Positions 28,513 to 62,623 of a stretch of 64,000 bases of DNA are shown piece after piece. A program made the position numbers and the translations under genes. The stretch's first letter is position 1. Each line of letters opens with the position of its first letter. This stretch comes from Octopus sinensis (Eukaryota). The DNA lies in NCBI RefSeq assembly GCF_006345805.1, contig NC_043010.1, positions 62,001-126,000 on the forward strand, read 5' to 3'. Under the pieces are notes generated by a model, which was not told where the DNA came from, ran no database searches, and worked only from the letters and a program-made list of their open reading frames with translations.

Positions 28513-28565
28513 TCAAAAGTTTGTTTTTGCTGTTCTATCCTCTGTTCCATTACCAGTACTTGAAC
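28513..28565 (-). CDS. Putative terminal exon of a paralogous adhesion GPCR (..SSTGNGTEDRTAKTNF*)
   Basis: Acceptor ttccattatgtttccag|gttcaagt. It is 53 nt to the stop, exactly like 11709-11761, and ends in PDZ-like KTNF. Confidence 0.7.
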
Positions 28566-30034
28566 CTGGAAACATAATGGAAAAACATAAAATATAAAAT
28601 TTTAAGCACATTAATTACCGGATAGTGAATTTGTATATATATATATATATATATATATATATATATATATATATATATATGTGTTTATTTCTTACTATTT
28701 GAACTGTTAGAGCTGTTTTCGCTATGTATCCAGTACAACCCTTAAACAAGTAAATAATATTTTCCTAAACAATAGATCAACGTATTTCAGTTTGTGACTT
28801 ATTCACGAATATACCATGAATGACGATGCCTTTCATGTTACTTCAGCCAATTGACAAGCGCTGATGGAAGAACTGTTCTGCTTTTAGACAAATACACTGT
28901 CAACACAAAGGTCACATCCTGTTTACATGTAGGAACACTTTCTTAAAATCTATCTGTACATCTTGAAAATGGCCAGCGTGTATATTTCACAGAAGACAAT
29001 GCTCGAAACGTAGATCTGAATCCATGAGAAACTACTTTGACAGCGTTCTTCAAATTATGCCGATGTGATCTGTTTGCCCGAACACTGTTGTACGTAAAGA
29101 TCCCCGTGTACTCTACCTGGGCACACAATATATATATATGCACACATATATTTATTCATTTATATATTTTTTAAATAATAAATAACATGACCATCCCGAA
29201 ATATGTGTGTGTATATGTATATATATTTTTACATTTTCCCGAGCAATATATAATTTGTTACGGGATTTGACTAGTAAAAATGCTACTGTCTGTTTCGCGG
29301 CCTCTATTGTTGCATTTCCTCAATATTGAACACTACTTAGACATACTGACCGGATGCGCATAAACCTCTTTTATGCCGGAAATAGATAGACTTTATATTG
29401 ATTTGGGAGTGGTAAAATGAAATGAATGGAAACGAAGTTAAAAAAATTGTATCATTGTTCGGCAATGGGATATGATTTATTCCTCTTTTATATCTCTTAG
29501 AGATGAGTTAAAGCGTATGAGCTGTGTGTGTATCTATCGATCCTAATGTAAAAATTAACTTGATCACTTCGAACAAAATGAAATTCCGCCGAGGAAAATT
29601 ATTTGCAGCACTAAATATTTTTCCTGTTTGAATGAAAGCAAATACTGGAATTGTGTGAATTTTTCTGCCCAGTAGAGCCTGCATCTTCTACTTCTATACA
29701 AAATAAGGAGAAAACATTTTTGCCCTCGGTTAATTGGTATAATTAAAAAGAAACTGAGCAAAGACAAACAGTTCCGTAGGGACAAGAAACGGAAAAGCGC
29801 AAAATAAAATGCTGATTTATTGAAATTACCCAAGCTTTGAGAAAATGTAAATGAATAGTTGTATGTATGAGAGAGAGGGAGGGAGTCTGTGCGCTTGCGT
29901 GCACGCGTGGGTGTCCTAAGGTATCATCCATTGTGGTTGATGATGACGACAACGACGAAGAGGATGGTATGGTGATTGATGAAGCTAATTATGACGGTAA
30001 TGGTGTTAAAAAAATGAAGAAACACGATACTTAC

Positions 30035-30110
30035 TTTCATCAAACAAATTCATGTTGAGCAATGCCTGGAATTTGTTCAAAACTTGGGAGATATTGCGCC
30101 GCAGTTGACT
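30035..30110 (-). pseudogene. Truncated, internally deleted copy of the exon at 45650-45804
   Basis: It keeps the donor aaa|gtaagt and QLRRNISQVLNK, but lacks the 5' half and about 20 internal nt. Confidence 0.65.
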
Positions 30111-31194
30111 TTGAACACTTAAAGAGATTAATTGTTTTGTTTCAATTATTTTTATATTCAAATATAGCTTCGGATTGGATCATCATAGCTAAAATAACCG
30201 CATTCAGTATGGTTGAGAACAGAATTAGTGAAGAAGGCTAGAACTACAAGAGGGTGACTAAAAGTTAGTGTTAAGAACATATTCGTCCAGTACCGTGGCT
30301 TTCCCTCTTTAGCATGTAAGAAATCCACATGGTGGTCTTCCCTCCGTGTATAAATTTTTATATACATTTTATATATATATATATATATATATGTAATTTC
30401 CTGGTTGGTTTTAAATTGCGTGTTAGCCACCTTAATTATTTTATAATCTTCACATTGCCATTTTGTGAAATCAATCACTCATTCTTATGTCATTCTCAAT
30501 GATATTGACAGGCGGGAGTTAACCTCCACCAGCCGTAATGGAGTGAGCATTGCTGATGAGTATTAACTTCTTATAAGAAATTACCATGCTAATCTAATCC
30601 ATCTGGCTTACCGTGGGGAATGTTGCCCCCCCCTGTCAATGCACCATGTGTTTTTTATGGCTAAGGTGTCTATGATTATAATTTAACACAATCACTGGTA
30701 AAAGTTTGCAAGACTCAACGAAAAGTTTTAGGAAAATAAAAATAAGAAATACGTTGAAATGTTACCGGTGTGTGGAATTATAAGGCACAAAAAGAAAATG
30801 GCTATCCCCAGACAGAACAGAATATGCTTCAACACACGAACTCATATAAAGAATCTTGCAAACCAAATCCCAAAACGAAATAGTCTATGACTAATATTTC
30901 TAATAATGCTGGTGCTCACTGCACTCTTGTCACCTTTAGTGATTGTGAATTATTTCCCTGTTGGTCTTAAAATGCTGATAGCCGCCTTGATTTATATATA
31001 CACGCTCATATATATATATATACATACATACACACACACACACACACACACACACACACAAACACACACACACACACACACACACATATATATATATATA
31101 TATATATATATATATATAATAAATACGTTCGTATATGTAAGTATATCGTATGTTGCATATGTATATATTTGTATTTATTTGCTTTTCTGAGTAT

Positions 31195-31253
31195 ATTCCA
31201 CTGATGAAGGCAGAGCATTTCTTATGCAGAGTCAGAAATCCGGGATCTGGAAT
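31195..31253 (+). ncRNA. Type I hammerhead-like motif with irregular stem II
   Basis: attcca CTGATGA aggc..gcat-ttctt-atgc..gtca GAAA tccggga TC tggaat: 6-bp stem I and an AUC triplet. Confidence 0.5.
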
Positions 31254-31484
31254 TATCCAGAAATGTTTGCTATTCTATTTTGTCTCTTCGTCTTCTCTCC
31301 TGGTGCTATATGAACATTTAATGTGGCTCTAGAGTCAAGATTTGACTGCTATTACCCTATATTATAATTTTAAATAATTGTTACCTTTGATGGTTTTTAT
31401 TCCCATGCTGGCCACCTGATAAAATCGATATTTAAATATTGATCTTATCCTTCTGTGCGTGTATGTATATATATATATATATTG

Positions 31485-59883: not shown

Positions 59884-60024
59884 TTATATATCTATCTATC
59901 TATCTATCTATCTATCTATCTATCTATCTATCTATCTATCTATCTATCTGTTTGTCTGTCTATCTATCTCTGTCTCTATCTACCTATTATGAATGAATGA
60001 AGAAAAAAAGACAATCGCACTTAC

Positions 60025-60413
60025 TTCTGCCGTCGGTAATTTTCCACTGATTCATTCTCTTACTTTCATTTACAAACCCCCTGAAGACATCTCTGGTATC
60101 TTTCTTGTATATACAATAGAATATGAAGATAAACATTCCTTGAAGTGTATTGAATATAGTAAAAAGATACACAAACACTTTTGCTGCTTCGCTAACAGCG
60201 AAGAAGGCAAAGACCCATGTGAGTCCAAACAAAAACAGCAAACCAACCAGGCCCAAAACACGTACTTTACTTCTTTTCTGCTGAGATCTCTTATTACTTT
60301 GCATCATTATAAGGTGCCAGATAACGAGAGAAGGCATGATAATGTTGAAGATGAGACTGATCGCAACAGGAACCAGGAAAGCAGCATAGAAATGTGGTGC
60401 GGATAACCAACAG
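60025..60413 (-). CDS. Adhesion GPCR TM5-TM7 exon (mirror of 1240-1628)
   Basis: Identical translation and splice sites. Confidence 0.9.
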
Positions 60414-60427
60414 CTACAAAGAAAATA

Positions 60428-61245
60428 GAAAGGCAATGAAAGGTATTCAGTGGACACTGATGAACAAGTAGGAGGACTTGGACTACGTAGATGATCTCGC
60501 ACTACTGTCACATCGCCTGCAAGACATGCAAGATAAGGTAGACCACCTGACAGAAACTTCACGGTGAGTGGGCTTGAGGATCAGCCGGGAAAAGACAAAA
60601 GTGCAGCGTATCAACAACAAGCAGGAAGAACCAATCACAATCGAGGGGGAACCTGTGGAGGATGTTAGTGAGTTTGTCTATCTTGGCAGCAAGATCAGCA
60701 AATCAGGTGGATCAGACGAGGACATCACGGCAAGAAGGCTTGGCAAGCCTTCGCTATTCTTCGGCCGGTATGGAAGTCCACTACCATCTCAACTCGAACT
60801 AAACTCTGCTTATTTAGTTAAAACGTAAAATACGTGCTTTTGTATGGCTCTGAAACAGGGAGAGCCACCTGCGGCAACTACAAGAAGATCCAGACCTTCA
60901 TCCACAAATGTCTCCGGCAGATCCTTCATCTGAGTGTCAAACATCAACCTGTGGGAATGGGCCAACCAGGAGCCCATACATGTTCAGATTAGACAAAGGA
61001 AATGGATATGGATCGGACACACACTGCGGAAAGAACTCTCAAATGTGACACGACAAGCACTTGACTGGAACCCGCAGGGGAAACATGAAGCGAGGATGCC
61101 CGAAGCTGACATGGAAGCGGAGCATTTTGGACGAGCTCAGGACCACCGGCCTGACATGGGAAGCAGCCAAGAAACGCCAATGACCGCAAAAAGTGGAAAA
61201 CAACTGTTGAGGCCCTATGCTCCAGATGGGGCAAAAAGGATTAAG
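60428..61245 (+). mobile_element. RTE 3' fragment (mirror of 408-1225)
   Basis: Same degenerate RT peptides. Confidence 0.85.
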
Positions 61246-62550
61246 AAGTACATTTGAGGAACGTATTTAGCAATGAAGACCGTCATATTAGATTCGCCTG
61301 GCAGGTAATGGCACTAGTGCGCCAACTAATTCCATATCAATGCGTTAGTCCTTAGGCTGGCGGAAGCTCTTCACAATTTGTCCTATAAAATCAATGATTA
61401 CTGTTTTCCTCGTCATATTGTAGTCAATTTATTCATTTAACTTTCGTTGAGTCGCGTTAATGTTTCTTCATAATTCTTGAATGGTTAGACTCAAGCAGAG
61501 CCAGTGGTATGCATCCGGACAGTGGGAATACGGCAAATATCTATTGTGATGGCAGTGGACACTTTCCTTGCCTGTCGCGTCTTTGAAAAACTTCTACCTC
61601 ATGTAGGTCAGTGTTGATAAATATTCAACTTCTCGCCTTTGACTCTGTCCTTCACATTAGCCATGATAAAAGGAAGGGTTCGTGGTTTCTTTAACGAAGC
61701 AACTGTTGGAGGGAATACTGCTTGTTTCAAGAACAAATCTAATGTTAGCATAAATAGAAAAATAATAATTAGTTATTAATGGAATTTGTCCTGTATTCTA
61801 AAGGTGAAGAATATTCGATGTTTTGTTCGTATTTTTGTTTGTTGCTTTCATCGGTAAATATTTGTTCTTATTAAATTGAGGGGAGACGCAAATGAGATCA
61901 TTGATATTCATGAGTCTCAGAACAAAAGCATTAACAATGATATTGAAGTAGGTTTACTACCAGCAACCAAAGTCCTGGCTTGATGCCAGTTGACCTACTA
62001 TTCTACAAAACTAAAGGAGTTATAGCGGTTATTAAGCTACCTTCAGCTTTCTCTTAGCTTATATTATTATAGTATATTCTCTATTTAGTTTTGTTACAGT
62101 AATGTAATGCTATTTATTGTTTTCTATTGGGAAATAAATTATTTTATTTGGCTTTTTTGAGTAAGGGTGAATATAATGACTGAACGTCACTTATAACTTA
62201 AGTGTTATCATTATACACAAATCCGAACTACAGTATATAACGCCATAGAGAAATATACTTATGAAACGCTATGAATATTAACGACATGTATGTATAATAT
62301 TTTCTTCGTGTTCATTTAACCGCTATAAGAAAATATAATTTAATGATTACAGAAATGCATATTTATTTATACTCAGTTGAAAAAAACGTGAGAAACATTT
62401 TCTTAATTAGTTTTTTTATATAAATATAGCATTCGCGCCGTATTTCAAAATAGCTAAAATGGCTACTTGCTACAGAGTAAATAAATCTAGCAATACTATT
62501 AGTTGTGAAGAGCAGAGAAAATGAGGTGAACGAAAAAGAGGAATACTTAC

Positions 62551-62623
62551 ACCTCTGCGGTTTTGATGTAATTGTCTGTGGAGTTAATTGCCAGGGTAAT
62601 TATAACGATGACTGCTGGAAGAC
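62551..62623 (-). CDS. Adhesion GPCR TM4-ECL2 exon (GLPAVIVIITLAINSTDNYIKTAEV)
   Basis: Acceptor aatcgttatcag| and donor gt|gtaagt, 73 nt. Its final GT plus the first C of the next exon gives V, reading ..NYIKTAEV-CWLS.. in frame. Confidence 0.9.

Follow-up and report, generated by a model that had tools for sequence, protein, structure and literature searches.

The unusual order of adhesion GPCR exons on the minus strand of this region arises because the Octopus sinensis assembly is read across a scaffold gap. The minus-strand exons on the two sides of the gap do not form one gene; we put at about 80% the probability of the whole explanation, i.e. that two unrelated gene remnants from one octopus receptor family lie side by side through a scaffold join. 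The window, as used here, is the whole stretch of 64,000 nucleotides analysed (CM016872.1, positions 62001-126000); all coordinates (w) refer to it, negative values denoting sequence left of its start. Every minus-strand exon listed in the initial annotation was found in the order given there, and, as had been stated, these exons cannot make one intact adhesion GPCR. No GAIN/GPS or TM1-3 exons were detected anywhere in the window by tblastn, run first with P0007 as query and later with 14 diverse full-length members of the family, and these searches equally returned no GAIN or 7TM exon between the HRM exons and the tail, as had been claimed. The minus-strand ORFs from 28 to 46 kb gave no hits to Pfam.

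The gap consists of 100 N (55871..55970) and represents a true discontinuity. On the left it abuts intron sequence 65 nt upstream of exon B1, and w 55870 is the common stop of alignments from the paralogous loci L003, L004 and L005. Its right edge falls within a LINE, and no LRR or Ly6 exons were found in the 18.6 kb covered to the right. The sequence on that side, contig B (55971..64000, minus strand), proved to be the right arm of an inverted duplication, whose left arm (1..5702, plus strand) belongs to contig A. Self-blastn identified 55971-61652 as the reverse complement of 1-5702 with 99.63% identity, a relationship that the initial annotation had missed. Comparison of the extended loci (L001 vs L002) lengthened the inverted match to 18,680 nt at 99.67% identity, the left arm reaching at least w -12976 and the right arm at least w 74618. 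The arm length of at least 18.7 kb is a lower bound, the outer end lying further out.

The left arm carries a plus-strand gene which is a 3' fragment of an adhesion GPCR, comprising TM3, TM4, TM5-7, a LINE insertion and then the tail exon. The TM5-TM7 exon (1240..1628) matches XP_029644817.2 (P0006, 204 aa) with 100% identity in tblastn, has its splice sites and hits Pfam 7tm_2 at E = 3.3e-26 (profile positions 93-250 of 250). The TM7-to-tail intron contains a minus-strand LINE retrotransposon (2128..7655), recognised from the ORF list (reverse transcriptase, endonuclease, ORF1-like) and the junction sequence. The tail exon (11709..11761, plus strand) encodes S SSSVNEIMDKATETNL followed by a stop and has a phase 1 acceptor. 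A 3'UTR-like flank (11900..12652, plus strand), assigned by homology, is related to the 3' flanks of the minus-strand gene (28233-27525) and of the canonical gene (L006, 30322-30970). LINEs and microsatellites are numerous throughout the region.

Contig B carries twins of these elements, namely TM3 (outside the window), TM4 (62624-62550, minus strand; left-arm counterpart at w -974 to -900), TM5-TM7 (60413-60025, minus strand) and the LINE. The TM4 and TM5-TM7 exons, placed by tblastn, are the ones that had been reported as lying upstream of the ectodomain exons. This is correct in scaffold coordinates and holds only across the gap. The inverted copy terminates inside the LINE, exactly where the gap begins; contig B breaks off there in mid-sequence, whereas contig A continues into the remaining LINE.

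Between the arms there are 29 SNPs (0.16%) and 10 small indels over the 18,680 nt, and the part inside the window accounts for a single SNP and a single (AGAT)5 indel; real paralogs at these loci differ by 4-18%. The right arm is therefore most likely a mis-scaffolded haplotig, that is, an uncollapsed allele which Hi-C scaffolding would have set about 50 kb from its counterpart in the wrong orientation. A less probable, though still credible, origin is a real and very recent inverted segmental duplication, with two facing TM3-TM7 fragment genes around a 50-kb spacer containing LOC115219516 and an assembler that left the inner end of the right arm unbridged. Such a duplication, with arms of at least 18.7 kb and a 50-kb spacer, predicts the same sequence picture as a haplotig. 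It is in keeping with the 29 arm differences being genuine substitutions and not just consensus-type indels, with the tendency of assemblers to break at the edges of long near-identical repeats, with the segmental duplication that already spreads this receptor family, and with an O. vulgaris locus in which the tail exon is duplicated locally in inverted orientation. Nevertheless, 0.16% is the kind of divergence seen between alleles, and every other duplicate pair here differs 25-100x more. The similarity also stops at a contig end within a LINE without a recognisable duplication border, the join consists of 100 N without further support, and three elements of the left copy are missing from the right one: the remainder of the LINE, the tail exon and the 3' flank.

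It is very improbable that a single rearranged, transcribed gene splices the TM, S/HRM and tail exons into unusual receptor or soluble isoforms. All exons do share a strand, and the TM7-to-tail and S3-to-tail junctions are both phase 1, so that TM5-7 (60025) could join the tail (28565) in frame. In addition, an NCBI model on the right-arm contig, XP_036365085.1 (P0001, 195 aa), crosses the gap. Its last exon ('TIIFYINP' and a stop; 55806..55832, minus strand), however, is an artefact of splicing over the gap: the eight codons involved are the intronic polypyrimidine tract and acceptor region before exon B1. Moreover, the gap separates the two parts, which come from different contigs, TM1-2 and GAIN are missing, the gene copied by the TM part already has a tail exon of its own, located on the other arm, and the S-HRM-S'-tail paralogs have Ly6/LRR exons and no TM exons upstream.

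The exons left of the gap (55805-28513, all on the minus strand) form an S1-S3 / HRM / S1'-S3' / tail cassette, which is NCBI LOC115219516; its 146-aa model, P0009, is the sole gene called over w 18.5-54 kb and matches six window exons at 100%. Unit B comprises B1 (S1; 55805-55725), 2 nt shorter than in the paralogs and thus frameshifted, B2 (S2; 51633-51581; MAHDLSTVTGTFRVEDCG) and B3, a complete S3 (45804-45650). Exons HRM1 (44171-44057) and HRM2 (42653-42515) follow; four 1-nt deletions in HRM2 relative to L005 and L003 destroy its canonical frame KCSPFTGIWQEPDMSQC. Pfam did not match HRM on P0009, and the HRM assignment is suggested only by way of the intact paralog L005, whose spliced version hits PF02793 at E = 6.8e-5, just under the gathering score. 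In unit A, A1 (S1'; 36233-36151) and A2 (S2'; 35750-35698) are intact. A3 (S3'; 30117-30035), described initially as degenerate, is indeed shortened: its acceptor is a different one, and the 5' half of S3, the part forming strand beta-3, is absent. The tail exon (28565-28513), S SSTGNGTEDRTAKTNF and a stop, is a homologue of the receptor's tail exon and ends in ...TAKTNF; the term 'PDZ exon' is a motif-level reading of T-x-F/L at the C-terminus. A minus-strand LINE in the A2-A3 intron (31435..34837) is common to L003 and L004, and a related copy with an internal inversion occupies the B2-B3 intron (46532..50021).

The cassette order, introns included, recurs on other chromosomes with 91-96% identity, colinear from w 55870 down to w 13444. 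The order S1 S2 S3 HRM1 HRM2 S1 S2 S3 tail is the same at L005, L003 and L004 carry the 3' cassette, and L006 has the canonical order S3 HRM1 HRM2 GAIN TM1-7 tail. The suggestion of a mis-ordered assembly thus applies at the gap, where there is an assembly problem, and fails for 28.5-55.9 kb. That a chimeric or collapsed contig A produced the S/HRM/S'/tail order with no GAIN/7TM between 42.5 and 28.6 kb is the most remote of the explanations, since L005 (CM016859.1), L004 (CM016863.1), L003 (unplaced) and L008 (O. vulgaris), all on independent contigs, agree with it in order and spacing, down to the introns and the inserted LINE, and protein models P0013 and P0015 agree with it in order, even though the sequence is rich in LINEs and microsatellites and the tandem duplicate units A and B might confuse an assembler.

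Family architecture was established by exhaustive HMMER and Pfam searches. Complete models elsewhere (P0013, P0015) read LRR - Ly6-like - S - HRM - S' - tail without GAIN or 7TM, and LOC115219516 is a member of this recurrent derived octopus gene type, which has lost the membrane-spanning part. The initial proposal of a rearranged or partly deleted receptor cluster is upheld in so far as GAIN/7TM are absent from the cassette; the TM exons it included are on a separate contig, where the plus-strand fragment gene is repeated in inverted form with allele-level divergence. Every border between modules is in phase 1, so a swap of GAIN+7TM for S' keeps the reading frame. We propose that in a parent receptor LRR - Ly6-like - S - HRM - GAIN - 7TM - tail a second, truncated S module took the place of the GAIN and 7TM block and came to adjoin the receptor tail exon directly. 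The change would have been a module-level duplication plus deletion, and the derived arrangement may later have spread to several chromosomes via segmental duplication.

The window's copy of LOC115219516 is probably a pseudogene. It lacks the 5' exons (LRR, Ly6-like) expected 1-8 kb upstream of B1; Ly6 exons do lie upstream of S1 in L004 and L005. The values of pN (~0.03), pS (0-0.02) and intron divergence (0.6-3.9%), from 270 coding nt with 4-8 substitutions per pair, would be consistent with neutral evolution and no purifying selection. P0009 takes its start codon (44086) from an alternative frame of HRM1, and the annotated 146-aa ORF is best read as largely an artefact. The deletions in HRM2 (four) and B1 (two) are mostly in short homopolymers and some could be assembly errors; the arm-vs-arm comparison bounds the assembly error rate at no more than ~2e-4 per base. 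The soluble ectodomain-only product envisaged initially fits the wider family, in which P0013 and P0015 are without GAIN/7TM. From the window copy a working soluble protein is unlikely because the 5' exons are missing and two exons (B1, HRM2) are frameshifted. 'Pseudogene' covers this copy alone: other loci have long open models (P0013, 844 aa), and the GT/AG sites of A1-A3 and the tail are preserved, which suggests that some truncated-type copies may be functional.

Vertebrate ADGRA receptors (GPR124/GPR125) have the architecture LRR - Ig - HormR - GAIN - 7TM - PDZ-binding tail. The octopus proteins resemble them in their N-terminal LRRs with LRRCT, the hormone-receptor motif before GAIN, the class-B 7TM and a C-terminal S/T-x-hydrophobic motif (..ETNF / ..ETNL). 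They differ in the LRRCT-HRM interval, which holds a Ly6/uPAR-like Cys module and a ferredoxin-like S module and no Ig domain. NCBI calls the octopus receptors G2-like or G6-like, names that need not imply orthology.

The S module shares with the SEA domain (ADGRG6/ADGRF receptors, mucins) a beta-alpha-beta-beta-alpha-beta topology in the confidently predicted structure (pLDDT 84), a location immediately N-terminal to HRM, and a Gly conserved at the beta2-beta3 turn. It differs by having no conserved G|SVVV-type motif; its sequence matched neither Pfam SEA nor any solved structure, and the top Foldseek matches of the model were generic ferredoxin-like folds (E at least 4.5e-3), none of them SEA. 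'SEA-like' is supported as a description of the predicted fold topology only, not of family membership.

Domain content and similarity identify the parent family as a known octopus-specific expansion of LRR/Death adhesion GPCRs, which Ritschard et al. 2019 (PMC6408891) described as 'group 3'. Full-length relatives from this analysis share its LRRs, GPS and class-B 7TM, one with a Death domain, and the genes are likewise octopus-restricted, multi-copy and co-localised. The window TM exons are 60-68% identical to such full-length receptors, and the S and HRM exons 35-89%. Unlike group 3, the window holds fragments only: one gene has TM3-7 and the tail, the other S-HRM-S'-tail. PMC6408891 describes neither the 7TM-less derivatives nor the Ly6-like and S modules. 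As for the join itself, the right arm resembles mis-placed haplotigs in Hi-C-scaffolded long-read assemblies of heterozygous genomes, which share, as judged here from the assembled sequence alone, allele-level divergence (0.16% SNPs), a copy that stops at a contig end in a repeat, a fixed-length N gap, and a location near the counterpart in arbitrary orientation.

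The odd minus-strand exon order has two sources: a scaffold join that brings in an inverted, allele-level copy of a receptor fragment, and a genuine, recurrent LRR adhesion-GPCR derivative without GAIN and 7TM. A composite query of candidate exons pulled out small 'uncharacterized' octopus proteins; P0009, the 146-aa product of LOC115219516, aligns to six window exons at 100 % identity, and no other gene is called between 18.5 and 54 kb. The exon map, with splice sites, runs on the minus strand from B1 (55805–55725), B2 (51633–51581) and B3 (45804–45650), which form unit B and carry the SEA-like module S (S1–S3), over HRM1 (44171–44057) and HRM2 (42653–42515) to A1 (36233–36151), A2 (35750–35698) and A3 (30117–30035), which form unit A with the shortened second copy S' (S1'–S3'), and ends with the tail exon (28565–28513). 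This confirms the order given in the initial annotation, which had TM4 and TM5-7 ahead of these exons. Its statement that no GAIN/GPS or TM exon lies between HRM and the terminal exon also held: tblastn with the canonical family gene model P0007 (GAIN, 7TM and tail), then with 14 diverse full-length relatives, found no missed exon there and no GAIN/GPS or TM1-3 exon in the whole window. No TM exon falls within the stretch from 55.9 to 28.5 kb, leaving the cassette without 7tm_2, and Pfam found no GAIN in P0009. Concatenated raw minus-strand ORFs gave no Pfam match; domains appear only once intact paralogs are correctly spliced. Long A/T-rich trinucleotide microsatellite tracts (14600–16700 and 21600–22050) produce poly-Ile/Leu/Asn pseudo-ORFs of 100–250 codons on both strands. 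The minus-strand TM4 (62624–62550) and TM5-7 (60413–60025) exons lie past the scaffold gap and were assigned to another contig and gene, so the idea of a single rearranged gene fails.

The cassette order itself recurs. On another chromosome, L005 (CM016859.1) reads S1 S2 S3 HRM1 HRM2 S1 S2 S3 tail on one strand, the unplaced L003 reads HRM2 S1 S2 S3 tail, and L004 (CM016863.1) reads Ly6 – S1 ... S1 S2 S3 tail. The minus strand of the window is colinear with the paralogous loci at 91–96 %, introns, inserted LINE and 3' flank included, and colinearity with L005 spans position 55870, the gap edge, down to 13444. The same cassette is present in O. vulgaris (L008, CATOCA020000001.1), where the tail exon and its flanks occur twice, inverted and about 5 kb apart (22603–22650, minus; 28029–28076, plus). 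A local misassembly of the cassette was rejected because the same order and colinear DNA are found at independent loci. What stands of the suspected mis-ordered assembly is the scaffold join, which sets the inverted TM copy beside LOC115219516. The canonical order is found at the P0007 locus, L006 (CM016887.1): S2/S3, HRM1, HRM2, GAIN/GPS, TM1-2, TM3, TM4, TM5-7, tail.

Self-comparison showed positions 55971–61652 to be the reverse complement of positions 1–5702 at 99.63 %. The match starts at the first base after the N run (55871–55970), and its end at 61652 is set only by the first base of the window being reached; up to there, a single SNP and an (AGAT)5 indel are all that separates the copies. 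The window covers positions 62001–126000 of the CM016872.1 chromosome scaffold (assembly GCA_006345805.1), near its start, and with the fetched loci that overlap its ends (L001, adding 10.6 kb on the right, and L002, adding 13 kb on the left) the match grows to 18,680 nt (−12976 to 5702 against 74618 to 55971), a lower bound limited only by the fetched sequence. Over this length 29 substitutions, or 0.16 %, and 10 small indels separate the copies. Every other duplicate pair within the window or close to it diverges by 4–18 %. The gap is bordered on the left by an intron, at a point 65 nt ahead of exon B1, and on the right by the interior of a LINE, in the inverted copy of a region 50 kb away, so the sequences flanking the gap are discontinuous. 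The right-hand contig breaks off at '...agagatttcag' followed by NNN, at the inner end of the duplication, and the left-hand copy runs on uninterrupted into the 5' part of the LINE past this point.

Two copies at allelic divergence, one of which breaks off where its contig meets a scaffold gap, point to a mis-scaffolded haplotig, and we give this reading of the right-hand copy a probability of about two in three. A real, very young inverted duplication appears rather unlikely. The O. vulgaris locus could not be used as an ortholog to decide the matter since it is nearer to L003 (96–97 %) than to the window (93–96 %). The assembly probably contains two copies of a stretch of about 18.7 kb or more near the start of CM016872.1.

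The left copy carries, on the plus strand, the 204-aa model P0006 (XP_029644817.2), with NCBI exons for TM3 (−3018 to −2878), TM4 (−974 to −900), TM5-7 (1240–1628) and, behind a LINE-containing intron, the tail (11709–11761, SSSVNEIMDKATETNL*). In a first homology search the TM5-7 translation returned only fragment models, including a 100 % identical O. sinensis NCBI protein. P0006 becomes alignable with the canonical gene 14 nt ahead of its TM3 exon, and no TM1-2/GAIN exon was found within 10 kb upstream of that exon, so it represents no more than the 3' part of a receptor gene; its 3' flank and the canonical one are homologous. The minus-strand TM4 and TM5-7 exons are its twin on the post-gap contig, modelled as P0001 (XP_036365085.1, 195 aa). 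Both proteins align with Pfam 7tm_2 over profile positions 93–250 of 250 (TM3–TM7, E = 3.3e-26), short of a complete domain, and no GAIN/GPS was found up to 10 kb upstream of their 7TM exons in L001, L002 and the window. P0001 equals P0006 through TM7 and then splices over the gap to eight codons (55832–55809, minus strand, 'TIIFYINP*') in the polypyrimidine tract ahead of B1; its C-terminus is therefore false, a caution for users of this RefSeq annotation.

Agreement in strand and phase made the tail exon at 28.5 kb a conceivable partner for the minus-strand TM5-7. This pairing was rejected, as the twin TM5-7 in the left arm already comes with a tail exon and a 3' flank of its own. The 3' flanks at 27525–28233 and 11900–12636 are homologous (78 %, inverted), both also match the canonical 3' flank (L006 30322–30970), and the genes are convergent; the two tail exons, about 15 kb from one another, thus mark real ends of genes. 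In the plus-strand gene, the intron between TM7 and tail holds a minus-strand LINE (2128–7655), the inverted twin of which lies at 55971–59545 on the plus strand. With long open endonuclease and reverse-transcriptase ORFs (202, 550 and 335 aa; 3172–5511) and an ORF1-like ORF at 6505–6933, it looks young and is possibly active.

How such a truncated gene type may have arisen can be inferred from its borders. All module borders are phase 1 (Ly6 to S1, S3 to HRM1, HRM2 to GAIN, TM7 to tail), and so is the S3'-to-tail border of the derived genes. In this scheme the S1–S3 block would have been duplicated behind HRM2, and a deletion would have joined the intron that follows S3' to the one preceding the tail exon; given the phases, both steps keep the frame. 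Intron DNA of units A and B is 82–88 % identical. The similarity stops about 900 nt downstream of S3 (29128 and 44789), and homology with the canonical TM7-tail intron sets in at 28680, some 115 nt before the tail exon, which puts the deletion junction between 29128 and 28680. Judged by divergence, the A/B duplication (12–18 %) appears older than the dispersal to other chromosomes (4–9 %). Uniform phase-1 borders thus let an expanded receptor family drop its GAIN and 7TM core with the frame still open, and the outcome is a recurrent ectodomain-only gene type.

A second LINE family has copies in the A2-A3 intron (31435–34837) and the B2-B3 intron (46532–50021), the latter with an internal inversion (47794–49965). 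These are more alike (92–94 %) than the flanking unit A and B DNA (82–88 %); the excess could stem from gene conversion or from a later insertion into the same site. The microsatellite-rich stretch 52193–54577 holds an inverted pair (53771–54577 against 53036–52193, 92 %).

The cassette in the window is in poor condition. Two nucleotides are missing from exon B1. In HRM2, four 1-nt deletions, seen against L005 and L003, destroy the canonical 'KCSPFTGIWQEPDMSQC' frame. Assembly indel error, bounded at about 2e-4 per base by comparison of the inverted arms, is a very unlikely source of the six indels found in these 220 nt of exon. P0009 is open only via an ATG in an alternative frame of HRM1; the 146-aa protein is an ORF salvaged from a frameshifted gene remnant. 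In the paralogs Ly6 exons lie 1–8 kb upstream of S1, and a search of both strands over the 18.6 kb that adjoin the gap on its right found no LRR or Ly6 exon; the 5' exons are missing at this locus. For the intact A1-A3-tail cassettes of the window, L003 and L004, pN was 0.014–0.033 and pS 0–0.018, with small counts, at an intron substitution divergence of 0.6–3.9 % (3'-flank divergences involving L003, about 0.5, were misalignments and were left out). These small counts give no indication of purifying selection. Elsewhere, copies carry damage in different exons, for instance L005 in A1 and A3. An ectodomain-only product, as first suggested, would fit the gene type, which recurs as P0013 and P0015, but the window copy is probably a dead, 5'-truncated and frameshifted member of it.

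The domain labels of the initial annotation stand in part. Spliced HRM1 and HRM2 of L005 match Pfam HRM (PF02793) over 58 of 66 positions at E = 6.8e-5, although the score of 23.6 bits is below the cut-off of 26.2, and canonical L006 shows HRM (E = 0.011) followed by GPS (6.5e-15) and 7tm_2 (2.5e-32); P0009 itself has no Pfam match, HRM included. The S module was modelled with AlphaFold2 from a 15-sequence alignment (pLDDT 83.9, pTM 0.76) and is predicted to form a beta-alpha-beta-beta-alpha-beta sandwich (E-H-E-E-H-(H)-E), the topology of a SEA domain. However, Pfam gave no SEA match, a profile search of PDB sequences gave chance-level matches without SEA, and the Foldseek matches in the PDB were all generic ferredoxin-like folds (best E 4.5e-3), none of them a SEA domain. 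'SEA-like' is therefore fair for topology and position and is not a demonstrated membership. Between beta2 and beta3 there is a near-invariant Gly ('..VEYCG') followed by variable residues (S, L, M, A, Y); a hydrophobic VVV run, as in the autoproteolysis motif G|S-V-V-V, is not conserved there. The third S' exon has a different acceptor, and the segment for strand beta-3 is absent from it; S' is accordingly predicted to be unable to form the complete fold. The C-terminus ends in a putative class I PDZ-type motif (S/T-x-hydrophobic; T-N-F, T-N-L), and the tail of a 7TM-less derivative would not be cytoplasmic.

An exhaustive HMMER search with P0008 (S and HRM1) returned 31 relatives. In P0013 (844 aa) and P0015 (426 aa) the order is LRR – Ly6-like – S – HRM – S' – '...TAETNF/L', with neither GAIN nor 7TM. 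These two and P0035 have a Cys-rich module between LRRCT and S that ends in '...CCxxxLCN' and is Ly6/uPAR-like by eye; Pfam gave it no significant match, only a weak DUF7044 on P0010 (E = 0.18). Gene models of the family are often chimeric: P0014 joins S/HRM exons to ankyrin repeats, P0010 joins them to just the end of the Ly6-like module, and P0011, the model at L008, fuses a Death-domain exon to S3' and tail. Residues 843–953 of the 957-aa adhesion-GPCR model P0019 are LINE reverse-transcriptase sequence (compare window 33041–33412 and 48170–48322), which is annotation contamination.

A more far-reaching proposal is tentative and, taken as a whole, improbable: phase-1 shuffling in an adhesion-GPCR expansion may have founded an octopus-specific secreted family without GAIN and 7TM (LRR – Ly6-like – S – HRM – truncated S' – relic tail), which segmental duplication would then have carried to several chromosomes, with some members, of the P0013 type, expressed as soluble decoys or ligands for receptor paralogs and the window holding a decayed member. 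Fragments and duplicates of this kind may have raised the number of adhesion GPCRs counted in the octopus-specific expansion.

That expansion was described as 'group 3', an octopus-specific set of adhesion GPCRs with GPS/7TM, of which some have LRRs and one has a Death domain; the genes of this set are co-localised and are expressed in axial nerve cord, suckers and skin (Ritschard et al., 2019; PMC6408891). The long relatives recovered here (P0025, P0028, P0035 and P0041) have, by Pfam, the architecture LRR – (LRRCT, Ly6/uPAR-like Cys module) – S – HRM – GPS – 7tm_2, with a C-terminal Death domain in one. By domain content they show the same octopus-restricted combination of LRR, GPS and 7tm_2, with one Death domain, as group 3.
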